Program-made: the position numbers and the translations under genes | The notes under the pieces: generated by a model | Told to the model about the DNA's origin: nothing | The model's database searches: none | What the model saw: the letters and a program-made list of their open reading frames with translations, nothing else | Sequence record: MW460245.1 | Reading direction: 5' to 3' (one strand) | DNA: 64,000 bases | In this document: piece by piece, positions 5,051 through 17,694 of the stretch | Layout of the letters: every line of letters begins with the position of its first letter | Numbering within the stretch: the stretch's first letter is position 1

Positions 5051-5425
5051 TCAAATCTTCGGCCAAGTGACCTTGTGGTTGCCTGTCATGACTGCCTGCT
5101 TACCGTCCTTGCTGACAGCAGGCGGTCGCAAAGGGGTCAGGCGATCCTGAACCTGCGAATTCACGCGGTTGAGATGCTCTGACATATGCGCCATCTCGTT
5201 GTTCACGATCTCCATGGCATGCTTCAGTTCGTCAATGACCGGAAGAGCATGTACCAGCGGATAGACGGAGCCGTTCAATAAAGCCATCGAGGTCACTACT
5301 GCATTCTCTGCAAGCTGATCTACGCTGCGCGCCTGTGTAAGTAAGGTGATGAGAGTAGCGCACGCCTTCGTCATGCGGTCGGCACGCGCCGCCAGCTGCT
5401 CATCTTCGTAGGTGTGATAGGTCAT
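5051..5425 (-). CDS. Hypothetical protein
   Basis: ATGA overlap with the upstream stop. Confidence 0.55.
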   Translation of the reverse strand: MTYHTYEDEQLAARADRMTKACATLITLLTQARSVDQLAENAVVTSMALLNGSVYPLVHALPVIDELKHAMEIVNNEMAHMSEHLNRVNSQVQDRLTPLRPPAVSKDGKQAVMTGNHKVTWPKI

Positions 5426-6045
5426 AGCACGATCTTCGTCCGTGATACACCAGTGGAGGTCAGGTGAACGACGTAGGTATCGGAGCAGCATTGAACCGTT
5501 ACATCTGCTTTCAGGAAATCCTCGTCGTTCGGCTTGTTGATCTCAGCGTTGCACTTTGCCTTGATCCGCACGTACTTCGACATTTCACCCGTGATCGGAA
5601 TGTTCAACTCTCGTTCGAGAGCTTCATGAGCCTCTCGCACCGTTAAGAATCCAAGGTCGCGCTGGCGTACAGATACATACAAAACCCACAGCATCTTTTG
5701 AACGTCCTCGATCATCTTAAGGGGATTGATCGAGGTGTCTTCCGCGGGAAGTTGATACTTGCGGAAGTCTTCCTCGCCAGTGTCCTTGTGCGCAAGGTTC
5801 CCTCGTTCATTCGTTACGAACTCACCCTTCGGCAAATAGATACGTTCGAACTGGCCGTGCCAACCGCCGCTACGATGGACCTTCGTACCGTCAGAATAGT
5901 TGGTGGGCATGCACGCGCTACACAAGTGCTTACCCTTCCGGTCTTCGATGCCAGTCCAGTCGAACCATTTCGTTGGCGTCCCAGGCTGCATAGCAAGTGC
6001 AGTGTTCTCCATGCACCCGCAGTTACCGCATTGGTATAAGCTCAT
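5422..6045 (-). CDS. Hypothetical Cys-rich (CxxC x2) phage protein
   Basis: CGNCGC...CSAC motifs; TGATG translational coupling. Confidence 0.65.
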   Translation of the reverse strand: MSLYQCGNCGCMENTALAMQPGTPTKWFDWTGIEDRKGKHLCSACMPTNYSDGTKVHRSGGWHGQFERIYLPKGEFVTNERGNLAHKDTGEEDFRKYQLPAEDTSINPLKMIEDVQKMLWVLYVSVRQRDLGFLTVREAHEALERELNIPITGEMSKYVRIKAKCNAEINKPNDEDFLKADVTVQCCSDTYVVHLTSTGVSRTKIVL

Positions 6046-6287
6046 CACTGATCCTTGAGTGCTTCACGCATTTGAGTCACATGCACGCACGATGCCTGCA
6101 CGAAGATGCTGCCGTTGTAGCCGTTGCTGAAACAGACCAACGACGGATAGGATCGCGGATAACCATGTACCTCAGGTTTGTCATCCTCGCCCCAGTAATG
6201 CTTGATGGCCTGTGCGAAACCAGCCTGCGTGCGCACCACGTAGAAGTTACCGTGAACGTGCTTCCAATTCGGAGGAAGGTCTTTCAT
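6045..6287 (-). CDS. Hypothetical protein
   Basis: Coupled start and stop overlaps. Confidence 0.55.
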   Translation of the reverse strand: MKDLPPNWKHVHGNFYVVRTQAGFAQAIKHYWGEDDKPEVHGYPRSYPSLVCFSNGYNGSIFVQASCVHVTQMREALKDQ

Positions 6288-7782: not shown

Positions 7783-8454
7783 TTAACGACGAAGGCCCTT
7801 AGCGAGGGCAAAGAATTCCTGGCGAACCTCCGGCTTGCGGAAGTCACCGCCGAGTTGCGAGGTGATCGTGTCGCTGCATGCGTCCATCACGCCTCGCGTT
7901 TTGACGCACATATGCTCTGCTTCAAGGACGACCGCGACGTGAGGCGTGTCCAGGATGAACTTGAGCGTCTCGAAGATTTGGGCAGTCAGGCGTTCCTGCA
8001 CTTGCGGTCGACGGCAGAAGAAGTCCACGATGCGATTGATCTTGGACAGGCCCACCACGTCCTTGTTTGGGATGTAAGCAACAAATGCCTCGCCAATTAT
8101 TGGCAAAAAATGGTGCTCGCAGGTCGAGTGAACCGTTGCATGACCACGGATCATCTCGTCATATTTGAACTTGTTCTCGACGACGGTAGCCTTCGGGAAG
8201 TTGTTGTAGTCCAGGCCATAGAAGATTTCCTGGGTGAACATCTTGGCGATACGCTTCGGCGTCTCGTACAGCGAATCGTCCTTCAGGTCGAGATTCAGTT
8301 CGGCCATGATCGCAGCCATATGCGATTCGATCTCTGCGCGGCGCGGCTTATGGAGCTCCGGGTGATGGACCATCGGCGTTTCCAGACCCATTTCGTACAG
8401 GTGCTGGTGAACCTTATGGCCGATGCTTGCGTCTTTCTGATATTCCGTTTTCAT
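7783..8454 (-). CDS. folE: GTP cyclohydrolase I
   Basis: ETPKRIAK, STCEHHFLP, GLSK, RPQVQERLT, HMCVKTRG. Confidence 0.97.
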   Translation of the reverse strand: MKTEYQKDASIGHKVHQHLYEMGLETPMVHHPELHKPRRAEIESHMAAIMAELNLDLKDDSLYETPKRIAKMFTQEIFYGLDYNNFPKATVVENKFKYDEMIRGHATVHSTCEHHFLPIIGEAFVAYIPNKDVVGLSKINRIVDFFCRRPQVQERLTAQIFETLKFILDTPHVAVVLEAEHMCVKTRGVMDACSDTITSQLGGDFRKPEVRQEFFALAKGLRR

Positions 8455-9050
8455 TACAGGAGTCCTTTCTTAACTTGATCGATGATGTGTTGCTTGTATG
8501 CTTCGAGCTCCGGCTCACTCATTACAACGAGGTTGAGCTCATACGTCACGAGATCCATGTTCGGTATCTCTGTACGCGTTACTTCACCTGCATATTTTGC
8601 CGCAAGCTCTCGTCCCATTTCGGACGCAAGGACGTGCGGTACGAATTTCTGCAGGTCTGTCTTAAATTCCTTCTCGATGTGTAGTGCTGCGAGGCACCGC
8701 GCTGCCACACCGCGAGGGTTGTGTTTGGGATGCTCCGGGATTGCTTGCTTGCAGTCTTCGCACAAACGAACGCCCTCGTAATAAGGGATCGTGTTGGGAT
8801 GCGTACACTTGACGTTGACATGATCCTGCAGGTGCGCCTTGCCTCTGTCAGTTATGTGCCACGAGGAGCCAGTGCGATAGGGCGATGGCTTTCGTGTCAT
8901 GTAGACAAGCTTGTACGCAGACAGTTGCGCCAGAATCGTTCCAACAGCACCGACGTCAAGCCCTATCTGACCAGACACCTCAGAGGCTGTAGCGCCTCCA
9001 ACCTTAGCACCGACTGCGGCCAGTGCTTCCCTGTGATAAGTGGTTAACAT
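8454..9050 (-). CDS. Winged-helix DNA-binding protein (MarR-like N-terminus)
   Basis: TASEVSGQIGLDVGAVGTILAQL...LV...W.ITDRG; RBS AGGAG before ATG at 9050. Confidence 0.55.
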   Translation of the reverse strand: MLTTYHREALAAVGAKVGGATASEVSGQIGLDVGAVGTILAQLSAYKLVYMTRKPSPYRTGSSWHITDRGKAHLQDHVNVKCTHPNTIPYYEGVRLCEDCKQAIPEHPKHNPRGVAARCLAALHIEKEFKTDLQKFVPHVLASEMGRELAAKYAGEVTRTEIPNMDLVTYELNLVVMSEPELEAYKQHIIDQVKKGLL

Positions 9051-9076
9051 CGGTGCTCCTAATTGCGTTGATGTTG

Positions 9077-9397
9077 TTACGCCAGCGTGGTCGGTGCTGC
9101 TACTGCGCGGTTGAGCCACATGAAGGCTGTTTGGAAGTGGCGCATCGCTTCGTCTACTGCTGCTTCAGAGGACGTGACGGTCGATTGCGGCGCTTCCTTG
9201 TTTTCGAGGCGTTGCTGCTCGCGTGCTGCGATATGCGCGCGAACCTTCGTCAGCTGGTAACGCACGCCTTCGCCGAGACCTTTGTTTTCATTCATCAGGT
9301 CGACGTCGGACTGCGTCAGCTTGCGATAACCGCTGATCGGAGGCGGCGTGTACACTGCCTCGATAGGATCGTCATTGCTTTTGATCTGTTCCTGCAT
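9077..9397 (-). CDS. acb2: Acb2-like (T4 Vs.4 family) cyclic-oligonucleotide sponge, anti-CBASS candidate
   Basis: ISGYRKLTQSDVDLMNENKGLG...HFQTAFMWLNRAVAAP matches the Acb2 pattern GYRxLSQEEIDxMNxxKxLG...QTGxMxxxRAxAQP; RBS CAGGAG. Confidence 0.8.
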   Translation of the reverse strand: MQEQIKSNDDPIEAVYTPPPISGYRKLTQSDVDLMNENKGLGEGVRYQLTKVRAHIAAREQQRLENKEAPQSTVTSSEAAVDEAMRHFQTAFMWLNRAVAAPTTLA

Positions 9398-9827
9398 TTT
9401 GCTTCTCCTGTTGAACGAGGTGCATCGGCGTGAAGCGAACAGTGCCATCCTCAAGATTGCCATAGAACATCTCACGCGGGCGCGCGTAGATGTTTCGCTT
9501 GTGCGGCCAGAGGTGCTCGTAGATCACCAGCTGTTCTTGGTTCTCTGTGTGCAGTGCCTCGAACAGCACTCGGTAGAGACCGCCCTTGTAATGGCGGTGT
9601 GTTGCAAGCGCAAGAGCTTCCGTTTCAATCAGAAACGTCTGACCTGCGATTTGCTTGGTTGCGGCAGTGACACGTGCCCAATCTTCGATCGTCTCAGCAC
9701 GCCAGCGCAGCGTGCGGCCAACAGAAGCGTCTGCTCCTGGGAACTTGTTCTCAGCACGCCAGCGATCGATAGTGCTTCTGGAGATATGCAGGTACGCTGC
9801 TACCTCCTTGATGGTCATCGTTTTCAT
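9372..9827 (-). CDS. AlpA/excisionase-like HTH fused to DUF1653
   Basis: MTIKEVAAYLHISRSTIDRW...FP...RW plus HRHYKGGLYRVL..A.H.E...LV.Y...ARP..MF. Confidence 0.75.
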   Translation of the reverse strand: MKTMTIKEVAAYLHISRSTIDRWRAENKFPGADASVGRTLRWRAETIEDWARVTAATKQIAGQTFLIETEALALATHRHYKGGLYRVLFEALHTENQEQLVIYEHLWPHKRNIYARPREMFYGNLEDGTVRFTPMHLVQQEKQNAGTDQKQ

Positions 9828-10018
9828 GGGTACATGATCCCTACAGAGTTAACGACAGGAGCCTGATAACCGTTCTCATCAGAGAAGAGCGAACTACCAG
9901 TTTCGAGAGCGTAATCAGTGATAGCATCCTCGACATACGTTGTCAGACGGTGCTCGTCTTCCTCGGTGATGTGGTCAGGCCATTCGACTTCCACTACGTA
10001 ACGTCTCTTCAGTGCCAT
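9824..10018 (-). CDS. Small hypothetical protein
   Basis: TAATG coupling with the queE stop. Confidence 0.5.
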   Translation of the reverse strand: MALKRRYVVEVEWPDHITEEDEHRLTTYVEDAITDYALETGSSLFSDENGYQAPVVNSVGIMYP

Positions 10019-10881
10019 TATGCCATTGCCACGAAAAGGTGTTGTTGGAGGCTCAAGCAAATGTTGTTCGCAAGAGCGTACTCACCTGCGTATCGGTAAT
10101 TGGCCGCCGTTGCCTCACGGTTGATGAGCTCGTCGTCCCAGATGCTAGAGACTTCACCTGCGTAAGGCTTCTTGTAGACAGCCATCGGCGATACCATCAA
10201 GCGCTGCATGCCGTGCTCTTCGGCCCATGCAAATGCCCAGTCAGGGATCGTGTGATGCGGCGACTCAGGATCAGCATCGACCACGAACTTCAGGTAGTCA
10301 GCGCGGTTCAGCACCTTCTCCGACAGCTTACCGTACTTACCTGCCTTGTAGACAGCCTTCGGAGAGACAACCACCGTGATTTCAGAAAGCCAGAAGCTCT
10401 CAGCATCGCCTTTCTTGAACAGTGGCATCTCTGCATCCAGCAGCTCAAAGAAGGAGGCCTGCGTGCCGTTCGTTTCGATCTGGACTGCGAGGTATTCATC
10501 TCCGACGCGCTCGAGGAACGCAGCGAGGTTATGCTGGAGCGTAGGTTCGCCGCCGGTGATAACCAGTACACGTTTGCGTCGGTCAACGCGGAAGGTATCG
10601 ATGATCGAATCGATCTTGTCGAACGACATGACCTTACCTTCGTTGAACTGGAACGAGGTGTCGCAGAAACGGCAAGCGCCAGCCTCGCTCTTTGCTCCGT
10701 AGTTGCAGCCAGATAGACGGATGAAGACAGCAGGCATCCCGGCGTAGGGCCCTTCGCCCTGCAGCGTGTCGAAAATCGAGGTGACCAACAGTTCGTCAGG
10801 CTTCAGGATGTAATCGTATTCCGCTTTTGCAACGTTGCGGTCAACGTTCTGTACAACAATGGGGAACGTCTTATGCGTCAT
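10018..10881 (-). CDS. queE: 7-carboxy-7-deazaguanine synthase (radical SAM), atypical CX10CX2C motif
   Basis: SIFDTLQGEG...PAVFIRLSGC, CRFCDT, VITGGEP.LQ, QIETNG, VVSPK, SLQQH; RBS AAGGA before ATG 10881. Confidence 0.95.
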   Translation of the reverse strand: MTHKTFPIVVQNVDRNVAKAEYDYILKPDELLVTSIFDTLQGEGPYAGMPAVFIRLSGCNYGAKSEAGACRFCDTSFQFNEGKVMSFDKIDSIIDTFRVDRRKRVLVITGGEPTLQHNLAAFLERVGDEYLAVQIETNGTQASFFELLDAEMPLFKKGDAESFWLSEITVVVSPKAVYKAGKYGKLSEKVLNRADYLKFVVDADPESPHHTIPDWAFAWAEEHGMQRLMVSPMAVYKKPYAGEVSSIWDDELINREATAANYRYAGEYALANNICLSLQQHLFVAMA

Positions 10882-10895
10882 GGTGATTCCTTGGC

Positions 10896-11342
10896 TCAAT
10901 AGCTCATCTTGTGGTGGTCCCTCGTGTCTGCGTCGAAGATACCTTTGACCTTCTTCTTGAACACAGGTGCCGTGGAGTTGAATGCATGCCTTGTATTTAC
11001 TTTGCACGCCTCCGGTTTACCACGCTTCGTCTTGATGTACATACCGCGAAGCACCACGCAGTCCACGATAGGGATACCAGCCGTAGTAAGCGCATCGACC
11101 GAATCATGGACGTAGGAGTTCGTCGGTGAGCCTGCTTGAACCCACGCATCAATCGAAGGGTAATGCGGATGCTTCGTCTTGAAGACCAATCCACCTAGAC
11201 AGCTCTTGCCCTTGAAGATGACACGCTTCGGTTTGACGACCTTCTTGGCTTTCTTTGCCTTAGGACTTTTTGCGCTTGAGGCTGCTGCCTGTTGCTTTTT
11301 TGCCTGGTCCTTCTGGGAAGGTTTTGCCGTGGAATTTTTCAT
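10896..11342 (-). CDS. Hypothetical basic protein inside the deazaguanine operon
   Basis: Fills the dpdA-queE gap and overlaps the dpdA 3' end by 83 nt. Confidence 0.5.
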   Translation of the reverse strand: MKNSTAKPSQKDQAKKQQAAASSAKSPKAKKAKKVVKPKRVIFKGKSCLGGLVFKTKHPHYPSIDAWVQAGSPTNSYVHDSVDALTTAGIPIVDCVVLRGMYIKTKRGKPEACKVNTRHAFNSTAPVFKKKVKGIFDADTRDHHKMSY

Positions 11343-12600
11343 AGCGAGAGATTACAGCCTCGTAGTGTGCGTCTGTCTTGATTGTTGTCTGAGCGAGACC
11401 GGCCAGCCCCTTCGTCTTCGAAGTGCTACGCATCGGCTTCCACTTGTTCGCCATCACATCGCGAATGTAGTTCACCAGCAAAGTGAACTTGTTCAAGGTG
11501 ATGTTGAGGTCCATCTTCTGGTGCACCTCAGCCAGCGGCACCTTACCTGCGAGATAGTCCTCAGCCAGTGCACACAGGAAGCGTGTCTGTTCAGCACGTA
11601 CCCACAGGTTGTGTGCTTCGAGGATACGCCACGAATGAATGATGCGCAGGTCATCGATGGACGTGCAGATAGGGCAGTTGCACTGCGGGGTCTGACGATA
11701 CGCCTGGTTCTTCTTCAGGTCCAGCGTCTTGAAGTCAGCCGTGTCGTACATACCGACCAGCGCTCCGAGACGATGGCTCACCGAGTCAGCGCCGATATTC
11801 TTCACGTAGCCGCTACGTTCCAGCAGCGCATAGAAAAACATCATGAGCTTGGATGTTACACCCAGGACGTGGAAGTACTCAGTCTTCTTGTGGTAGCGGC
11901 TAATCACATACATCAGGTTCTCGACTGCTGCGTTCGTGCGGTCGATACCTGGCGGCGGCTTGATGCCGAGACCTGCGATTGCTACCACGTTCGCCTTACG
12001 ATCCAGCACGTCAAGTCTGGCTTTACGAAGTTCGACCGTCGACCCGTGACTGATGAGTGCCAGATCGATACCGGGATCGAGGCGCTTCAGGATGTAGTCG
12101 TCATTAGCCTTGATGAGGTGCGACACCTGACGGAAGTACGCAGGTTCGAAGGCGGTTCGCACCGGCAAGTCCAGAGGCATGCCGATGTTTGCGTCCTTGT
12201 TGTAGCGGTCAATCACGCCATCCGGATGCACGAAGTCCACGTTGGCTCGCAGCAGCTGGAAGCCACCCGAGTCTACGATGGACTTGATGCCCTGTTTCTC
12301 GTACGGTGCTTTCTTGTAGTCCTTTCCCACTTCAGGGTTCGCCAGAACGAGGGAAAGCCCGCATGCCTTGATGGCCGTCGGGCTAAAGATGGGAACGCAA
12401 ACGTCGAATTGCTCTTCAGGAATGACCGCACCACGTGCTGAGGACATGGCCTCTACGACGGTGCGATCCTTTGTACGCCAACGCTTGACCTTCGGGCCAA
12501 ACTCGGTCGTTTCTTTTTCATTGGGCTTGTTTTTGACGTACAGCTGAGCAGTCCGCTCGCTGTACGCCTCAACGCCCGCCGGTACATAGTGGACGGTCAT
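11260..12600 (-). CDS. dpdA: TGT-fold guanine transglycosylase, DpdA-like (DNA 7-deazaguanine insertion)
   Basis: DSGGFQ, MPLDLP, AIAG, FHVLG, GADS, zinc site CNCPIC...HNL; adjacent to preQ-pathway genes. Confidence 0.85.
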   Translation of the reverse strand: MTVHYVPAGVEAYSERTAQLYVKNKPNEKETTEFGPKVKRWRTKDRTVVEAMSSARGAVIPEEQFDVCVPIFSPTAIKACGLSLVLANPEVGKDYKKAPYEKQGIKSIVDSGGFQLLRANVDFVHPDGVIDRYNKDANIGMPLDLPVRTAFEPAYFRQVSHLIKANDDYILKRLDPGIDLALISHGSTVELRKARLDVLDRKANVVAIAGLGIKPPPGIDRTNAAVENLMYVISRYHKKTEYFHVLGVTSKLMMFFYALLERSGYVKNIGADSVSHRLGALVGMYDTADFKTLDLKKNQAYRQTPQCNCPICTSIDDLRIIHSWRILEAHNLWVRAEQTRFLCALAEDYLAGKVPLAEVHQKMDLNITLNKFTLLVNYIRDVMANKWKPMRSTSKTKGLAGLAQTTIKTDAHYEAVISRYEKFHGKTFPEGPGKKATGSSLKRKKS

Positions 12601-12612
12601 TGTGTTCCTTGG

Positions 12613-13725
12613 TTAAAGCGTTCGCAGCTCGTGAATGATATTGCGCATACCATCCGTATCGAGGTCGTCCATCTCTTCCATGAAGTAGAACGGATTCTCC
12701 TCGTAGGCGCGCATATGGCGGATCATGGTGTCGTGCCCCATGTCCCTGAACAACCATTTACTGCTCACGAACTCCGGATGCGAGGCGGCATCTGTCAGCA
12801 CAGGTGCGCACCCATAGATCATGGCCTCAGCAATGCAGTAGCCGTAGTTCTCTTCCCGCGAATGCGAGACCATCATGACAGCAGAGGCGAGCTCTTCGTG
12901 GTACTGCTGCTTGGTCAAGTTCACCTTGATATCGAGGACGCCATCTTCCTGCGCGAGAAGTGCCTGACGCACCACCGCATCGTCGTTCGAACGCAGCGTC
13001 TTACGTGAGGACGTGATGACGAATTGCCATTCCGGGAACTGTTTCTTGAGATCGCGGAACAGGTCGATGGTGACGATCGGATTCTTCTCGGTGTCCAAGC
13101 GGTTCGTCAGCAGGATTTTCTTCTGCTTCGGAATCAGCTTACCAAGCTTCTGGTACTCGGACAAGAAGATCGGATTCTTCGTGACCTTGATGCGGTCTGC
13201 CAGATGCAGTGCGTTCAGCGGAGCGAGACGCCTCGTCATCACTGCCTTCTTGTGGTACAGAGAACCAACGAACACCTTATCGCATGCTGCGATCCAGCCC
13301 ACCTCAGTGTATTGCTGATACGGCGCAGCAACCTCGAATGCGTCGCCCTTCGTGTACGAGGCAGCATGAAGAAACGACACGAGGTGCACCTTCACCTTGT
13401 TCATTTGCGCCATCAGACGAATCTGTTCGAGGCCCCAGAACTCCGTATCGAACACGAAGATGATGGCGCCGTCTTCGACCTCACCGCGATTGAACATGCC
13501 AGCGAGGTACTGGAGTTGGGTGCTCTTGTAGTGACACGTCGAGTTGATGTCGAGGAACGTACCGACCTTGATGTCGTCCTCCAGCAACGGCTCACCGTTG
13601 ATAATGAACACATCGAAGCCAGCCTTGCTGAGTGCCTCGGGAATGCGGCGATACCATTGCTCTGTGTAACGTTCGCTGAGCGGTTCGATCGGCAGGCAGA
13701 TGAGTTGCTTGCGGTCAGTATGCAT
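12613..13725 (-). CDS. GT-B fold glycosyltransferase (GT4-like)
   Basis: NRLDTEK and E-X7-E motif EENYGYCIAE followed by AMIYGC.PV. Confidence 0.85.
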   Translation of the reverse strand: MHTDRKQLICLPIEPLSERYTEQWYRRIPEALSKAGFDVFIINGEPLLEDDIKVGTFLDINSTCHYKSTQLQYLAGMFNRGEVEDGAIIFVFDTEFWGLEQIRLMAQMNKVKVHLVSFLHAASYTKGDAFEVAAPYQQYTEVGWIAACDKVFVGSLYHKKAVMTRRLAPLNALHLADRIKVTKNPIFLSEYQKLGKLIPKQKKILLTNRLDTEKNPIVTIDLFRDLKKQFPEWQFVITSSRKTLRSNDDAVVRQALLAQEDGVLDIKVNLTKQQYHEELASAVMMVSHSREENYGYCIAEAMIYGCAPVLTDAASHPEFVSSKWLFRDMGHDTMIRHMRAYEENPFYFMEEMDDLDTDGMRNIIHELRTL

Positions 13726-14182
13726 TGTCGTCGAGCTCCAGGTCACCCTCGAAGTCAGCCGGGGCGGTTTTGATGGCCTGCGTTACAGGGAACACGAACA
13801 CATGGCGGTCGCGCTCGAACTTGATTTGATCGCCTTCACGCAAGCATTCGATGTCGGTGAAGCTCCAGAACGCAGGGCCTTCCACTTCGTTCTGACCTAG
13901 CCAATGGAACGCAGAAGGATCGACACGCAGCATGAGCGTGATGTTGGACGGACGGTACTCAACGCGCGTCTTGGTTACGTCCATGGTCACGTAGCAGCTA
14001 AACTCCAGCCCCACCTTTTCATACGTGAGGATACCGCTGTTGTCACTTATGTACAGGTGATTGATGCTATGCACGCGCAACGCGTTCTGCACCTTTCGCG
14101 TGTGGTCGCGGACGAACTCTGCGTTGGTGAACAGGGTGGGGATGCCCTTGAGGCGCCCCTCTACTTCCAGTCCGATTTTCAC
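13715..14182 (-). CDS. Hypothetical protein in the modification operon
   Basis: Tightly packed between the deacetylase and the GT; N-terminal GLEVEGRLKGIPTLF. Confidence 0.7.
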   Translation of the reverse strand: MKIGLEVEGRLKGIPTLFTNAEFVRDHTRKVQNALRVHSINHLYISDNSGILTYEKVGLEFSCYVTMDVTKTRVEYRPSNITLMLRVDPSAFHWLGQNEVEGPAFWSFTDIECLREGDQIKFERDRHVFVFPVTQAIKTAPADFEGDLELDDNAY

Positions 14183-14185
14183 TTG

Positions 14186-14893
14186 TTACTCCGTTGTGTA
14201 TTGAATGTCGCCCCAGCGCATCTCGACCTTGTCTTTGCAGACTTCAAGAAGGTACGAATAGAATTTGGCGACGCGTTCTCTGACAGTAAAGCCGCCAACC
14301 TTCTCTGCATAGCGGGCCCTTACGTCCTGCATTTCGAGGCGATTCCAGTCTTCGTCAGTACACTTCACACATACACCTGCACCGTAATGCACAGTGTGCC
14401 ATTCGTAGATGTTGAAGTCCTGCTGTCGGATGTCCTCGAACAGGTAATACTTGGCATCGTTCTGCCAGAGGGAGGACTGCGAAAGGTAGAAGCTGTCCAA
14501 CAGTCGGCGCTTGTCCTTCGAAGCTTCCTCACCGAGGTACACACCTCGTTTCATGTCCACGCTGTAGAAATGAGTGGCGAAGTGCCGCCACCCCCTATTT
14601 ACAGCTTTGTGATCGTCGTGCCAGTCTTGGATCGACGGCACGTATATCTCGTTGTACTCACTCAATGGCAGTGCGTTCTGCTCCCCGAAGTACGGCGTGA
14701 CATGAAGATGCTCGGCGAAGTCCAGAGCTTCACGACGACGAACATTCGTCAGTTCGTTACACCACAGCACTGACACCTTGTAGTCAGGTACAGCCATGTT
14801 TACCGCAGCGCCCCAGCCTTTGCGGATGATGCTGTAGCAACCGATGAGCTCATCGTCCACGTGAGGAGCGATGATTAGAACCTTTGTAGGCAT
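14186..14893 (-). CDS. PIG-L/LmbE-family N-acetyl-sugar deacetylase
   Basis: IIAPHVDDELIG and WHDDH metal motifs. Confidence 0.85.
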   Translation of the reverse strand: MPTKVLIIAPHVDDELIGCYSIIRKGWGAAVNMAVPDYKVSVLWCNELTNVRRREALDFAEHLHVTPYFGEQNALPLSEYNEIYVPSIQDWHDDHKAVNRGWRHFATHFYSVDMKRGVYLGEEASKDKRRLLDSFYLSQSSLWQNDAKYYLFEDIRQQDFNIYEWHTVHYGAGVCVKCTDEDWNRLEMQDVRARYAEKVGGFTVRERVAKFYSYLLEVCKDKVEMRWGDIQYTTE

Positions 14894-14905
14894 TTGTTGC
14901 TCCTG

Positions 14906-15553
14906 TTAGCAGTCGGTATCCAGCGGAATGTCGATCAGGTATTCATCACTGAAAGACACGTTGAATCGATCGATGAAGGCCCAAACGTCCATGTCCGTCC
15001 AGTCATAGATCGGATAGATGAAGTTCAGGCCACCCAGGCCGTTCGGTACGTAGCACGTCAGCTCTTCACGGGACGCAATAGCACCGTTGCGCACGAAGTT
15101 GGTCGAACGGCCGTCACCTCGATCAAACTCAGAAATGCGCGTACCATCGATCTGCGTGGTGTAGCCTGCACGAACGCACTCCTCGAGAGATGCGAATACG
15201 ATCGGACGCTTGCGCGCAGACTCGTACAGGAATTCGCGGGTCAGCGGATGCACCTTGTTCGGACCTGTCGTCTTCGGATTGTGGACCACCTTCATAGGCT
15301 TGTCCCAGAACTCTCGGTCACGCTCATGATATGCAGCACGTGCCAGGAAGTCTACGACGACGCTATCCTTGCCGCCGCTATGGCCGACGAATGCACGGTT
15401 GAGATCGAAATTACCGCACGACTGAAGGCTTGCTGCATTGATACGACGCGTTGCCTCTGCGGCCTTTTCGAAGATGCCTGCCCAGCACTTAGCATATTCG
15501 ATGTCGTCGAACTGCGCGTAAGGCTTGGTATCCGGCTTAGAAATAACAGTCAT
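14906..15553 (-). CDS. PAPS-reductase-like PP-loop (adenine nucleotide alpha-hydrolase) protein
   Basis: HSGGKDS PP-motif, DGTRISE, YPIYDWTDMDVW; lacks the C-terminal ECGLH motif. Confidence 0.8.
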   Translation of the reverse strand: MTVISKPDTKPYAQFDDIEYAKCWAGIFEKAAEATRRINAASLQSCGNFDLNRAFVGHSGGKDSVVVDFLARAAYHERDREFWDKPMKVVHNPKTTGPNKVHPLTREFLYESARKRPIVFASLEECVRAGYTTQIDGTRISEFDRGDGRSTNFVRNGAIASREELTCYVPNGLGGLNFIYPIYDWTDMDVWAFIDRFNVSFSDEYLIDIPLDTDC

Positions 15554-16463
15554 TGTTGAAGATTCCTTGTTCATCGTGGAAGACACGCAGCTTACCTGCA
15601 GGGACTTGACCGCGTTGCAGCACCAGACGCGGGATCGTGAGGAAGTCAGCTTCGACTCCAGCGCCGAAATACGCGGCAAGCATGATGCGCGCACGAGAGA
15701 TGAGCGCACCGTCACCGAACTGTTCAACACTGTCCAGAACGATCCACACGTCGAGGTCTGAGGTCGAGGGCCACTGAGGTTCCTTGACCAGCAGAGTCAC
15801 CTTCAACTCATTCGCGATTGCTTGCCACTTCTCCGATTCAGCGAACACAGGCTTTTGCTCTTCGACGTCCAGCAGAGCGATAACCTTCTTGAATGCATCA
15901 GGACGTGACACACCGTCGAACACGTTCGGCAGGTTGTATTGCGTCATGAGACGACGCAACGTGGCGTGGGTCTTCATTCGGAAATCATCCGACGGACGCT
16001 TGCCATCTTCCTGATACGCCAGAGGCGGCAGGTAGAAGATTTGGTCATATGTCGAGAGCCACGACAGGATATAGCCTTCCATGCCCTTCACCATCGGGTG
16101 ATCGGGGAAGTCGGTGCACGCGATAGCGTACAGGTCCAGCACGCTGCGATCAGTGATGACGATATGCGCGTCGCCCTTCAGCTCTGCCTCTACCTCAGCC
16201 TTCACGAGATTCGAGATCATCCCGAAGTGTGCACGAGGATCAGCCGGGAAGTGTTCATCCTTCCAAGTGATCTTGCGATCTTGGCTACTGACGACTTCGG
16301 CGAGGACATGGTACTGACGCTTGAGGCGTGCAGTAGTCTCCAGTGCCATCGTCGTCTTGCCGCTGCTGTTGGTACCAGTGAAAGCAACCTTGTACTTCGC
16401 ACTGCGCGGCTTGAGGGTCGATTGGGATGCGTCCACGAATTGTTCCATGAGAGTCTTGGTCAT
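15537..16463 (-). CDS. P-loop nucleotide kinase (AAA_28/NadR/TMP-kinase-like) with extra C-terminal domain
   Basis: AFTGTNSSGKTT Walker A, ITDRS, EDGKR lid; C-terminal SDLDVWIV. Confidence 0.75.
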   Translation of the reverse strand: MTKTLMEQFVDASQSTLKPRSAKYKVAFTGTNSSGKTTMALETTARLKRQYHVLAEVVSSQDRKITWKDEHFPADPRAHFGMISNLVKAEVEAELKGDAHIVITDRSVLDLYAIACTDFPDHPMVKGMEGYILSWLSTYDQIFYLPPLAYQEDGKRPSDDFRMKTHATLRRLMTQYNLPNVFDGVSRPDAFKKVIALLDVEEQKPVFAESEKWQAIANELKVTLLVKEPQWPSTSDLDVWIVLDSVEQFGDGALISRARIMLAAYFGAGVEADFLTIPRLVLQRGQVPAGKLRVFHDEQGIFNNDCYF

Positions 16464-16468
16464 GATGA

Positions 16469-16837
16469 TTACTGGATGATGTAGTGACAAACGGCACCGC
16501 ATTCGCCGTCTTCGGAAACTTCGATGATGAGGTCACGCTTGACCCGATCACCTTGGTAGTGTTGATCGAGGCGCTTCGCCAGATCGTCTGCGATCATTTC
16601 ACAGCTCTTGTGATTCAGTTCCAGCGTACCATCCTCGTACCAGCCTTCCACCATATTCAGGAACTGATGGAACTCGATCTCACGATTGTCGTGATGCACT
16701 TCGATCTGGATGCGGAACTTGAACAGGTGACGATGACGGTCGCGCAGGTACGCAACGTCTTCTGGTGCGTTCGGATAGAAGTGATAGCCTTTGCGTTGGA
16801 AGGTGACGTAGATGAACTTCGGATTGTGTGCCAGCAT
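16469..16837 (-). CDS. dpdL: QueD-paralogue T-fold protein, DpdL-like (predicted CDG decarboxylase)
   Basis: LRDRHRHLF (LxxxHRHxF), REIEF, KSCEMIA, VSEDGECGA; lacks the QueD catalytic Cys. Confidence 0.7.
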   Translation of the reverse strand: MLAHNPKFIYVTFQRKGYHFYPNAPEDVAYLRDRHRHLFKFRIQIEVHHDNREIEFHQFLNMVEGWYEDGTLELNHKSCEMIADDLAKRLDQHYQGDRVKRDLIIEVSEDGECGAVCHYIIQ

Positions 16838-16867
16838 ATGAACCTCAGAGTGGGTTAGGACTCAATC

Positions 16868-16877
16868 TATTTACTAC
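16868..16877 (-). promoter_or_regulatory. GTAGTAAATA motif heading the dpdL-to-queE operon
   Basis: Exact motif 31 nt upstream of the dpdL start. Confidence 0.6.
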
Positions 16878-16890
16878 GTGAGTCGCATGA

Positions 16891-16930
16891 GAAAAGGAAA
16901 CAGGAGCCCGTCCCTGAGGAAGAGCTCCTG
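16891..16930 (-). terminator. Intrinsic terminator after queD
   Basis: CAGGAGC/GCTCCTG stem followed on the minus strand by TTTCCTTTTC. Confidence 0.65.
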
Positions 16931-16943
16931 ATCGTTACTGCGT

Positions 16944-17417
16944 TTAATCCATCACTGCGCCTACTGCGGATTCTCCAGTGTATATAGCGCTATTGCCACC
17001 ATGCTCGCGCACCTCGCACTCAACAACCCATACGCGATCACCGTACTTTTCATCGATGATGCGTGAGGCCACGTTGAAAGCGAATTGGGCAAAGCGTTCG
17101 CAGCCAACACCCGGTTCCATGACCACCACGTCCATGATACCACGACGTTGTGCTTCCATGAACCATTCGAGTTCCGGGTCGTCCTTCGCTACCACTGTCT
17201 TGTGGTCGAAGGTATTGACCAACTCAGCCTTCAGCTCTTTCAGGCCACCGAAGTCGGTTACCCACCCTTTGTCGTCCAACTCATGCGCCGCGAACTTGAA
17301 ACCGATCTGGACAGCGTAGCCATGAAGCTTGCAGCAGTGCGAGTGCGTCGCGCGCCATTGACGGAAGGCGCAGGACAGGCCCACGTCGTGGGTGTACGTT
17401 TTGGTACTAAGGAACAT
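16944..17417 (-). CDS. queD: 6-carboxy-5,6,7,8-tetrahydropterin synthase
   Basis: CAFRQWRATHSHCCKLHGY, WVTDFGGLK, FDH, VREH..NSAIY. Confidence 0.93.
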   Translation of the reverse strand: MFLSTKTYTHDVGLSCAFRQWRATHSHCCKLHGYAVQIGFKFAAHELDDKGWVTDFGGLKELKAELVNTFDHKTVVAKDDPELEWFMEAQRRGIMDVVVMEPGVGCERFAQFAFNVASRIIDEKYGDRVWVVECEVREHGGNSAIYTGESAVGAVMD

Positions 17418-17439
17418 TCAGGTTCTCCTGTTGTATGCT

Positions 17440-17694
17440 CTATTTACTACCTTCAGAAAGGTTGTCAACGATGACGCTCATCCCGTAGAGGGTACCAATG
17501 CTGCCGACATTCTTAACCTTGTCTAAGAAGCGATTAACACCGTCGTTGAACGCAGCATGCATTTCCCATTTGTCCGTTATGAACAATGGCGTTCTCCCAG
17601 CTTTCGCCCTTCGCATGTAGCGGAAGCGGCCTGCTTGTGCCTTATTCGGCGGATGCTTCCTGTGCCGCCGCATACTCATCAAACTGGATGCCAT
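17440..17694 (-). CDS. Hypothetical basic protein
   Basis: Operonic position. Confidence 0.45.
   Translation of the reverse strand: MASSLMSMRRHRKHPPNKAQAGRFRYMRRAKAGRTPLFITDKWEMHAAFNDGVNRFLDKVKNVGSIGTLYGMSVIVDNLSEGSK
17441..17450 (-). promoter_or_regulatory. GTAGTAAATA motif upstream of queD
   Basis: Exact motif 24 nt upstream of the start. Confidence 0.6.

Follow-up and report, generated by a model that had tools for sequence, protein, structure and literature searches.

What base does a phage make that encodes the enzymes for 7-carboxy-7-deazaguanine and a transglycosylase for placing it in DNA, but no QueC, and that carries a glycosyltransferase and a sugar deacetylase in the same gene string? 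The question is raised by the first 64 kb (the window) of the 227-kb genome of the Burkholderia jumbo phage BCSR5, where the minus strand holds, between positions 7783 and 17450, a single string of genes from QueD to FolE. We favour, with slightly better than even confidence, a 7-deazaguanine DNA-modification system that depends on DpdL, does without QueC and has acquired a module for sugar decoration; judging from its gene content, BCSR5 probably has in its DNA a so far undescribed guanine analogue that bears a sugar.

Gene content and layout of the locus

The string reads QueD, DpdL, AAA_28 kinase, PP-loop enzyme, PIG-L/LmbE deacetylase, h155, GT4-type glycosyltransferase (GT), DpdA, h97, QueE, four lineage-specific genes and FolE. 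The gene identities proposed in the initial annotation (folE, queD, queE, a TGT-fold dpdA, a dpdL-like gene, kinase, PP-loop, deacetylase and GT) were confirmed by domain, profile and structure searches, and all genes listed there are in place. FolE, QueD and QueE convert GTP to 7-carboxy-7-deazaguanine (CDG). They are represented by QueD (6-carboxytetrahydropterin synthase, PTPS family; 16944..17417, minus strand, as are all features below; Pfam PTPS, 2.7e-15), QueE (7-carboxy-7-deazaguanine synthase, a radical SAM enzyme; 10018..10881; Pfam Radical_SAM, PHROG 'QueE-like' 3e-38, NCBIfam QueE models ~1e-20) and FolE (GTP cyclohydrolase I; 7783..8454; Pfam GTP_cyclohydroI, 2.4e-57). QueE and FolE are separated by four genes specific to BCSR5 (8454..10018): by Pfam, a 64-aa ORF, a protein with HTH_17 and DUF1653, one with an Acb2/Tad1 hairpin, and an ORF of 198 aa. 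A search of the related loci found homologues in none, and the four do not belong to the conserved system.

A promoter-like phage motif, GTAGTAAATA, precedes the start codon of QueD by 23 nt (17441..17450), and a second copy (16868..16877), 30 nt ahead of the start codon of DpdL, stands at the head of a packed string from DpdL to QueE with intergenic spacings of -17 to +70 bp. Within the window the motif occurs 11 times at ≤1 mismatch, against 0.59 expected, and on the sense strand in every case. The tight minus-strand operon first described thus stands as to packing and motif, but there are two motif copies, and a terminator-like hairpin with T-run (16897..16916; a consensus match only) splits QueD from DpdL.

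One of the closest points of comparison is Achromobacter phage Motura, whose backbone is syntenic with that of BCSR5 and shows the same gene order (identities of 59% for QueD, 59% for FolE, 51% for QueE and 27% for the TGT). Between QueD and DpdA, Motura carries QueC and an AsnB-type amidotransferase, indicative of a preQ0/G+ type route, whereas BCSR5 carries DpdL, the kinase, the PP-loop enzyme, PIG-L, h155 and the GT; the difference resembles the exchange of one cassette for another at a single position. Searching the whole 227-kb BCSR5 genome with Motura QueC gave no QueC (best E 0.4), while the same type of search with Motura QueD recovered the BCSR5 protein, so that the lack of queC initially noted in the window holds for the entire genome. 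The PP-loop enzyme was ruled out as a QueC, having no similarity to that of Motura.

DpdA, its probable partner and DpdL

DpdA (11260..12600, 446 aa) is a transglycosylase of TGT fold that is predicted to replace guanine in DNA with a deazaguanine base. As a single sequence it has no match in Pfam, PHROG, NCBIfam or the PDB; a 30-sequence profile matches archaeal TGT and QTRT1 (E 3e-9), and the 26 best Foldseek matches of its AF2 model (pLDDT 90) are all TGTs (E ~1e-10). The DSGGFQ motif, D144, D272 and the zinc site C307/C309/C312/H330 are invariant, and the enzyme is catalytically intact in its residues. Directly downstream lies h97 (10896..11189), a 97-aa protein whose homologues occupy the same place after the TGT in loci L006-L022, and which accompanies the BCSR5-type DpdA lineage both with and without the cassette; it is probably a DpdA partner.

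DpdL (16469..16837) belongs to a family of QueD-like T-fold proteins predicted to decarboxylate CDG. In tblastn searches it matches gp125 of Acidovorax phage ACP17 (60% identity) and the founding DpdL, CGPG_00067 of the Cellulophaga phage phiST (30%), it carries the LxxxHRH signature, and hhalign aligns it with QueD at a probability of 86%. The DNA of phiST contains 2'-deoxy-7-deazaguanosine (dDG), made by a DpdL/DpdA3 system (Hutinet et al., NAR 2023, PMC10516641). Both phages encode FolE, QueD, QueE, a DpdL with the LxxxHRH signature and a TGT-fold transglycosylase, and both are without QueC. They differ in that the 259-aa DpdA3 is of another lineage, with no detectable similarity to the DpdA of BCSR5, and in that BCSR5 has about six extra genes between DpdL and DpdA; phiST has no homologue of the GT, PIG-L, PP-loop enzyme or h155.

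A conserved quartet of probable tailoring genes

These four form the constant part of the cassette. The PP-loop ATP pyrophosphatase (14906..15553) has an invariant SGGKDS motif and falls into the PAPS-reductase/CysD/FAD-synthase family (PDB profile match to CysD at 1.4e-6 and also to FAD synthase; NCBIfam CysD 7e-6). The PIG-L/LmbE-type zinc deacetylase (14186..14893), a predicted sugar de-N-acetylase, matches Pfam PIG-L at 4.7e-5 with a score of 24 bits, under the curated cut-off, and its PDB profile match is weak (1uan, E 0.14); its motifs, APHxDDExIGC and D90/H92/H95, are intact and conserved. The orphan h155 (13715..14182, 155 aa) gives an AF2 model of pLDDT 90 with no structural match in the PDB or BFVD, and is represented in metagenomes by 362 clusters at 50% identity. 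The GT (12613..13725) is a GT-B enzyme of GT4 type (Pfam Glycos_transf_1, 9.5e-11) with an invariant EX7E motif (E292...E300) and a faint BshA match in NCBIfam; its N-terminal (acceptor) domain is unique and strongly conserved, PDB profile matches being to the C-terminal domains of group-1 GTs only. Motif scans of 185,579 bacterial and archaeal genomes found no relative of either the GT or the PP-loop enzyme.

The quartet was found in ~25 phage or metagenome loci, and among these it is complete wherever any member occurs. It adjoins two DpdA lineages, the BCSR5-type and an unrelated-looking X1/ACP17-type, on several phage backbones, and DpdL is almost always beside it; among 11 loci found by h155 alone, 10 of them assessable, DpdL is present in eight, a TGT in six and QueC in none. 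In this neighbourhood survey the cassette recurs in many phages other than BCSR5. Next to it is a variable slot holding second group-1 GTs, a GT2 with DUF2264, a CmcI-type sugar O-methyltransferase or the kinase. The latter, an AAA_28 P-loop protein (15537..16463; Pfam AAA_28, 5.5e-11; conserved Walker A GTNSSGKTT), occurs only in the cassettes of BCSR5, L006, L007, L012, L013 and L054; its initial placement with the core was thus not borne out, and by its distribution it is classed as an accessory enzyme of this slot.

The GT extends beyond the quartet. A DpdA-GT-DpdL triad is found in ACP17 and in the group of the Pseudomonas jumbo phage PA5oct, which like BCSR5 also encode QueE, QueD and FolE; these triads are without PP-loop enzyme, PIG-L and h155, and their GT is 22-25% identical to that of BCSR5. 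Expression of ACP17 dpdL and dpdA in E. coli gave no dDG, and the authors proposed that enzymes were missing (PMC10516641); gp124, located between the two genes, is a member of the BCSR5 GT family. The virion DNA of PA5oct withstands five restriction enzymes, and the pattern of resistance suggests a modified G (PMC12191111). The published accounts we found do not tie the triad GT to the deazaguanine pathway.

One pathway or two

Considered as a separate module, the quartet would share the operon but have as its target a different base, the backbone or some other nucleic acid, and the deazaguanine genes would yield undecorated dDG, as those of phiST do, or dCDG. We regard this as unlikely, though it is the strongest of the alternatives. 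DpdL and DpdA3 alone suffice for dDG in phiST (PMC10516641), DNA-metabolism genes of phages cluster in any case, and some quartets stand apart: L041 has no deazaguanine gene, nor do the 26 kb examined of the metagenomic contig L042, where the quartet sits in a RecA/clamp-loader/SbcCD replication and recombination module, and no TGT was found within 10 kb in L036 and L044. Against it, PIG-L and DpdL are fused into one protein in two loci of different DpdA lineages (L039 and L055), and the cassette accompanies DpdA across both lineages and several backbones. Moreover, in a tblastn search of 50,697 phage records, all 17 that match the GT also carry DpdL, the two matches lying within ~350 bp; the record sets are nested, with 29 for DpdL, 17 for the GT and 3 for PP-loop/PIG-L. 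Finally, no ThyA-family enzyme was found in BCSR5, which makes a hydroxymethylpyrimidine acceptor unlikely.

The proposal that the extra enzymes build a further-modified, possibly amino-sugar-bearing deazaguanine thus gains from linkage, from the fusions, from the constant GT-DpdL adjacency and from the sugar-tailoring neighbours, a body of support that is genomic throughout. The following steps for the GT, PIG-L, PP-loop enzyme and kinase are inferred from the linkage of the genes, the fusions and the nested record sets. DpdL would, by family membership and as proposed for phiST, convert CDG to 7-deazaguanine; the GT would add a hexosamine-type sugar to this product, by analogy GlcNAc from UDP-GlcNAc; PIG-L would strip the N-acetyl group and expose an amine; and the PP-loop enzyme, perhaps aided by h155, may, again by analogy, adenylate a partner with ATP, to be joined to the exposed amine or the sugar. 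The kinase, if present, would contribute an extra decoration. The fusions, together with the predicted action of DpdL on the free base, favour decoration before insertion and attachment via C7, after which DpdA would insert the bulky base into phage DNA, as eukaryotic TGT does with queuine. The model is weakest in its step order and in the C7 site. At C7, plain 7-deazaguanine has neither an oxygen nor a nitrogen that would obviously serve as a handle, so that a C7 sugar would require C-glycosylation or a DpdL that does not simply decarboxylate. In addition, GT4 enzymes usually form O-glycosides, and the single deazapurine precedent, huimycin, has its sugar on N2.

In another reading, the PP-loop enzyme takes the place of QueC without being its orthologue. 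It would adenylate the CDG carboxylate, the sole reactive C7 handle from the encoded pathway, and join it to the PIG-L-freed amine of a GT-made GlcN conjugate, giving an N-glycosaminyl 7-amido-7-deazaguanine (an ADG-type amide); DpdL would bind or carry the deazapurine instead of decarboxylating it. PP-loop enzymes like QueC use ATP to activate carboxylates or oxo groups, the SGGKDS motif is invariant, and the GT4, LmbE and ligase sequence of mycothiol and bacillithiol synthesis ends in such an amide. DpdL activity, moreover, is only predicted, and the E. coli experiment yielded no dDG (PMC10516641). We nevertheless consider this a little less likely still than a separate module: known members of the enzyme's own branch, PAPS-reductase/CysD/FAD-synthase, pass AMP to sulfate or phosphate; phiST encodes DpdL and its DNA carries dDG; and ACP17 and PA5oct pair the GT with DpdL without PP-loop enzyme or PIG-L, which implies a GT acceptor independent of PP-loop ligation.

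Burkholderia has its own queuosine pathway, so host QueC could supply preQ0 for a known base such as dPreQ0, while the GT and deacetylase, whose classes usually serve to make envelope and small-molecule glycoconjugates, act on host LPS, envelope or protein. Such a non-nucleic-acid target, for which the envelope-type GT genes among the auxiliary metabolic genes of X1 (PMC13384950) could be cited, is very improbable, as the quartet is found only in replication or nucleotide-metabolism modules and in no case close to genes for lysis or structure, its fusion with DpdL speaks for a common pathway, the acceptor domain of the GT is unique and without bacterial relatives in our scan, and DpdL would be pointless were preQ0 the inserted base.

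Relation to known sugar-bearing bases and conjugates

The favoured DpdL-dependent pathway with sugar decoration has partial parallels. In mycothiol (MshA/MshB/MshC) and bacillithiol (BshA/BshB/BshC) synthesis, a GT4 GlcNAc-transferase, an LmbE/PIG-L de-N-acetylase and an ATP-dependent adenylating ligase that uses the freed amine follow one another; the enzyme classes are those of BCSR5, where the order is inferred, but the analogy is one of logic and not of orthology, the ligase being CysRS-like there and of PAPS-reductase PP-loop type in BCSR5, with a presumed deazapurine or DNA acceptor. T-even glucosylated or arabinosylated 5-hydroxymethylcytosine and base J are sugar-bearing DNA bases made by GT-B enzymes against restriction, as proposed for BCSR5, but they are pyrimidines with a hydroxymethyl handle from a ThyA-type enzyme, of which BCSR5 has no homologue. 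We know of no glycosylated purine analogue in DNA. The only described case we found of a GT adding GlcNAc to a preQ0- or CDG-derived deazapurine is that of huimycin/dapiramicin, where HuiG of huimycin synthesis transfers GlcNAc to a 7-deazapurine (bioRxiv 10.64898/2026.04.15.718813). Huimycin is an actinomycete secondary metabolite and not DNA, its sugar is placed at N2 of the free base after O-methylation, and no DpdA is involved. Our literature search found no description of a DpdL-dependent amino-sugar decoration of 7-deazaguanine. In BCSR5, such a base would be expected to shield the DNA of the virion against restriction and against other defences that target DNA.

The 7-deazaguanine pathway of BCSR5

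Positions 7783-17450 match Burkholderia phage BCSR5 (MW460245.1), a jumbo myovirus of 227,351 bp from sewage, with 100% identity; record and window share one numbering, and the other 163 kb were searched as loci L002-L005. At 7783-17450, the GenBank annotation names only FolE and QueE and lists all other genes as 'hypothetical protein'. Searches of Pfam, PHROGs and NCBIfam bear out the initial annotation of minus-strand genes for FolE (7783-8454; E 2e-57), QueE (10018-10881), QueD (16944-17417), a glycosyltransferase with a Glycos_transf_1 domain (GT, 12613-13725) and an AAA_28 P-loop protein, here called the kinase (15537-16463). Two more proteins on the same strand, one PIG-L-like (14186-14893) and one a PP-loop protein resembling PAPS reductases (14906-15553), are matched more weakly. 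FolE, QueD and QueE are established to make 7-carboxy-7-deazaguanine (CDG), and TGT-fold DpdA enzymes to exchange guanine in DNA.

The absence of queC, initially noted for the window, extends to the whole genome: tblastn and phmmer searches with QueC and the AsnB-like amidotransferase of Achromobacter phage Motura, a syntenic jumbo phage, covered all 227 kb with 1,666 ORFs and found neither (no match better than E 0.4), whereas Motura QueD finds its BCSR5 counterpart at 59% identity. Genes for ThyA and a dUTPase lie close to the cluster in Motura and in two related metagenomic loci (L007 and L008); two ThyA-family queries from related loci gave no BCSR5 match (best E >1), and a dUTPase query from related phages found no homologue across the genome (window and L002-L005). 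Lacking a gene for a ThyA-family dNMP hydroxymethylase, BCSR5 is unlikely to use a hydroxymethylpyrimidine as acceptor, and we dropped the idea of hydroxymethylpyrimidine glycosylation. No protein of the cassette matches any PADLOC model, including those of the bacterial Dpd restriction-modification system (DpdA-K).

As a lone query, the 446-aa protein encoded at 11260-12600 (minus strand) matches nothing in Pfam, PHROGs, NCBIfam, PDB or PADLOC, and its TGT fold is detectable only through its family profile and fold search. It has 92 metagenomic relatives, some of which carry PF01702. Across an alignment of 30 homologues, D110 (in DSGGFQ), D144, D272 and C307/C309/C312/H330 are all invariant and line up with the catalytic and substrate-binding aspartates and the CxCxxC...H zinc-site motifs of archaeosine TGT (aTGT); the profile built from these sequences matches archaeosine TGT and QTRT1 (E 3e-9 to 1e-6), and the AF2 model (pLDDT 90.3) has TGTs as its 26 top Foldseek matches in the PDB (E about 1e-10). 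Invariant motifs, profile match and fold therefore identify the protein as an intact TGT-fold enzyme, as the initial annotation had it, and its gene stands in a phage genome beside those for 7-deazaguanine synthesis; action on DNA, not tRNA, is its predicted role. It shows no sequence similarity to the DpdA3 type: DpdA3 of phage phiST (CGPG_00065) has 259 aa and is not matched by the BCSR5-family profile, and as a phmmer query it finds only itself among a set of loci that did not include BCSR5.

The 122-aa DpdL-like protein is 60% identical to gp125 of phage ACP17 and 30% identical to phiST CGPG_00067 (E 2e-4 against the whole database, 3e-9 locally), the protein for which Hutinet et al. coined the name DpdL (PMC10516641). 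The LxxxHRH motif, described by the same authors as standing in place of the CxxxHGH of QueD (PMC10516641), is present as L31...H35-R36-H37 in a 15-sequence alignment, and a profile-profile comparison (hhalign) relates the protein to QueD with a probability of 86% (E 5e-6). The gene occurs with DpdA, FolE, QueD and QueE and without QueC. By family membership, the protein is a predicted CDG decarboxylase yielding 7-deazaguanine, a role that is itself a prediction for the founding phiST member (PMC10516641).

Transcription signals and local insertions

The promoter-like motif GTAGTAAATA is real, with 11 copies in the window where 0.59 would be expected. Its sites span 1808-52756 and lie on the minus strand before ~31 kb and on the plus strand after it, that is, always in the sense direction, a pattern that marks a divergent transcription switch near 31 kb and a likely phage-specific promoter class. 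Copies are found upstream of QueD and upstream of DpdL, and a hairpin followed by a T-run separates these two genes; other than this hairpin after QueD, scans for sigma-70 and terminator consensus sequences gave no signal above background.

Two insertions between QueE and FolE, both on the minus strand, are specific to BCSR5: a protein with HTH_17 and DUF1653 domains (9372-9827) and an ORF of 198 aa that faintly resembles TraR-type zinc fingers (8454-9050). A third BCSR5-specific gene in the deazaguanine operon (9077-9397, minus strand), absent from all related loci, encodes a small Acb2/Tad1-hairpin protein (Pfam E 2e-11), a candidate for sponging up the cyclic nucleotides used in immune signalling.

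The sugar-transfer and tailoring proteins

Besides the kinase, four proteins set the locus apart: the PP-loop enzyme, the PIG-L protein, an orphan protein of 155 aa (h155) and the GT, hereafter the quartet. The C-terminal domain of the GT scores 42 bits against a Pfam cut-off of 26.4 for Glycos_transf_1, its profile matches group-1 glycosyltransferases in the PDB, and E292 and E300 of its EX7E motif are invariant among 13 homologues. The donor domain is recognisable; the N-terminal half shows unusual conservation and no known relative in a PDB profile search. The protein is a GT4-type enzyme (GT-B, 'group 1'); its donor sugar is proposed by analogy and its acceptor from gene linkage.

The PIG-L protein scores 24.3 bits, below the PF02585 gathering cut-off of 28.2, and its profile finds only 1uan in the PDB (E 0.14); among 12 homologues, APHxDDExIGC is nearly invariant and D90, H92 and H95 are invariant, so that both the N-terminal (A/P)H(P/x)DDE metal/catalytic motif and a downstream histidine motif are present. 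In the PP-loop enzyme, SGGKDS is invariant and a DW..D..VW..I motif is conserved; NCBIfam CysD covers the C-terminal motif region (7e-6), and CysD (1.4e-6) and FAD synthase (1.5e-4) are the nearest solved relatives. It matches no QueC family in Pfam or NCBIfam, and a diverged QueC was rejected as its family assignment on these grounds together with the Motura QueC search and the PDB profile comparison. The predicted structure of h155 is confident (pLDDT 90) and has no structural neighbour in the PDB or BFVD, nor does its profile match any PDB sequence; at 50% identity, its family in the metagenome library falls into 362 clusters. The kinase has no sequence relative in the PDB. Among 185,579 bacterial and archaeal genomes, scans with two GT motif patterns found no relative, and for the PP-loop enzyme the only matches were generic ones of 30 aa to the PAPS-reductase motif. 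The module is conserved, apparently confined to phages, and forms part of the deazaguanine pathway's DpdL branch.

Distribution across phages and metagenomes

Motura shares the BCSR5 backbone of primase, QueD, a slot, DpdA, QueE, FolE and RecA, but carries QueC and a separate AsnB-like amidotransferase (L009, 10067-11953) at the position where BCSR5 has DpdL, kinase, PP-loop enzyme, PIG-L, h155 and GT. The two syntenic jumbo phages look like carriers of alternative cassettes swapped at a single position. Metagenomic loci related to BCSR5 through DpdA (L006-L016) repeat the order PP-loop, PIG-L, h155, GT, DpdA and h97, a small protein encoded downstream of DpdA, with DpdL nearby. Quartet and DpdL also adjoin a DpdA of quite another kind in two T4-like Xanthomonas phages, X1 (FolE, PP-loop, PIG-L, h143, GT, TGT, DpdL, QueE) and BUDD, the latter assessed by BLAST coordinates alone, and the quartet recurs in L030, L040, L043 and L055. 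A further group of DpdA relatives (L017 and L019-L022; TGT at ~10001-11296) is accompanied by h97, QueE and FolE, with DpdL, quartet and QueC all absent within 10 kb of the TGT; its members are candidates for the insertion of CDG itself or of another base.

To avoid the bias of a search started from DpdA, we also used h155 as query. All four quartet genes occur together in every locus so found, and of the 11 new ones 10 were assessable, with DpdL in 8, a TGT in 6 and QueC in none, counts that rest on fragments with flanks of at most 10 kb. The same contig was reached twice as L011 and L038, L012 and L046, L013 and L045, L014 and L037, and L016 and L035. Exceptions are L041 and L042, where the quartet lies among RecA, clamp-loader and SbcCD genes, with a CmcI-type sugar O-methyltransferase gene after it. 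In the 26 kb read of the L042 contig no deazaguanine gene appears; its downstream 18.7 kb (L059) contain only a marginal QueD-like end fragment (E 0.004), which has no Pfam support.

A tblastn search of all 50,697 phage records found the GT in 17, including ACP17, ten PA5oct-like records, Phosso, BUCT-ZZ01, X1 and BUDD; all 17 are DpdL-positive, with at most about 350 bp between the two matches. PP-loop enzyme and PIG-L occur in only 3 records, giving nested sets of 29 (DpdL), 17 (GT) and 3 (quartet). PA5oct gp168 is TGT-like, gp167 the GT and gp166 DpdL. Two proteins annotated as hypothetical, ACP17 gp124 (L032, 10969-11997) and PA5oct gp167 (L053, 6843-7904), belong to this DpdL-linked GT family, and each is encoded between a TGT-like gene and DpdL. 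Single ORFs that join a PIG-L catalytic domain to a following DpdL domain were observed at L039:7760-8653 and L055:9178-10008, two loci of different DpdA lineages.

Wherever its content could be identified, the slot beside the quartet holds a sugar-tailoring or phosphorylating enzyme: an AAA_28 kinase in BCSR5, L006, L007, L012, L013 and L054, a second group-1 GT in L008 and L039, GT2 with DUF2264 in L011 and, downstream of the GT, a gene of the CmcI/rhamnosyl O-methyltransferase family in L042 (11975-12718). In the last case a 137-aa ORF with faint SLOG-family matches only (11565-11978; E 0.02) separates GT and methyltransferase. L055, an X1-type cassette locus, encodes an Amidoligase_2 protein (glutamine-synthetase-like; 5359-6156) two genes upstream of FolE, which may be an additional tailoring enzyme, and a DUF723 gene between h155 and GT in L054 (10520-11344) may be a homing-endonuclease-type insertion.

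A proposed glyco-deazaguanine and its alternatives

Linkage, gene fusion and nested distribution suggest that the GT would decorate the product of DpdL. In mycothiol and bacillithiol synthesis, pairs of GT4 and LmbE enzymes handle GlcNAc, and by analogy with these pairs and with HuiG the sugar would be GlcNAc. In huimycin synthesis, HuiG transfers GlcNAc onto a deazapurine (bioRxiv 10.64898/2026.04.15.718813). PIG-L would then liberate the amine, the PP-loop enzyme and h155 would attach a further group at the expense of ATP, and the kinase or other slot enzymes would complete the decoration. Two points lead us to favour decoration ahead of insertion, with C7 as the attachment site: the free base is the predicted substrate of DpdL (PMC10516641), and DpdL occurs fused to PIG-L. 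The chemistry may be C-glycosylation, an N2 linkage made on the DNA, or an amide of CDG.

From genomic evidence and structural prediction, we tentatively propose, as a reading that is possible rather than probable, that guanine in the virion DNA of BCSR5 and its relatives is replaced by a 7-deazaguanine bearing a glucosamine-type sugar, derivatised further via PP-loop enzyme, h155 and kinase, built before insertion and installed by a TGT-fold enzyme that would tolerate a very bulky base. Triad phages with DpdA, GT and DpdL (ACP17, PA5oct) would have a simpler N-acetyl-hexosamine form, and the slot enzymes would give rise to lineage-specific glyco-deazaguanines. The further-modified, sugar-bearing base of the initial annotation stands in part: genetic linkage, the PIG-L-DpdL fusions and the adjacency of GT and DpdL in all 17 records speak for it, and the L041 and L042 quartets lacking deazaguanine genes speak against it. 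The latter are what would be expected if the phages contained plain 2'-deoxy-7-deazaguanosine (dDG), reported from phiST DNA, and a separate DNA-modification module that merely shares the operon, an explanation that fusions and strict adjacency make unlikely. Somewhat less likely again is that the PP-loop enzyme, set apart from QueC by family, stands in for it functionally, with a sugar-linked amide as the product. That the sugar genes have a target other than nucleic acids, with preQ0 supplied by host QueC, is highly improbable.

Relation to known modifications and significance

7-Deazaguanine DNA modifications are a main phage escape from restriction enzymes, CRISPR nucleases and modification-sensing nucleases. 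The eight derivatives known to us include none that bears a sugar. BCSR5 belongs to a known kind, the DpdL branch of these modifications; new is the conserved extra module, which predicts a new product. We found nothing relevant on glycosylated or glucosamine-bearing deazaguanines in the literature searched, nor any link of the cassette or of any glycosyltransferase to deazaguanine in DNA; BCSR5 may already appear among the DpdL phages tabulated in the supplement of the 2023 paper on DpdL. The cluster goes unmentioned in the X1 genome paper (PMC13384950). Two published experiments support the proposal indirectly. Expression of ACP17 dpdL and dpdA in E. coli gave no dDG, for which the authors suspected missing enzymes, leaving the GT gene between the two out of consideration (PMC10516641), and the resistance of PA5oct virion DNA to five restriction enzymes has been read as a sign of a modified G (PMC12191111).

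If true, our proposal would describe the first glycosylated purine analogue in any DNA, would likely explain why DpdL and DpdA alone yielded no product, and would offer a candidate identity for the modified G of PA5oct-like therapeutic jumbo phages. The module's marker h155 forms hundreds of distinct metagenome clusters, and the full quartet occurs in three cultured phages. The cassette opens new enzyme families to study: a GT with a unique acceptor domain, the orphan fold of h155, and, in a nucleobase pathway, an enzyme of the PAPS-reductase type. BCSR5 and phages of the PA5oct type are in therapeutic use or under consideration for it, and the chemistry of their DNA bears on how they can be sequenced and restriction-mapped and on how sensitive they are to host defences.
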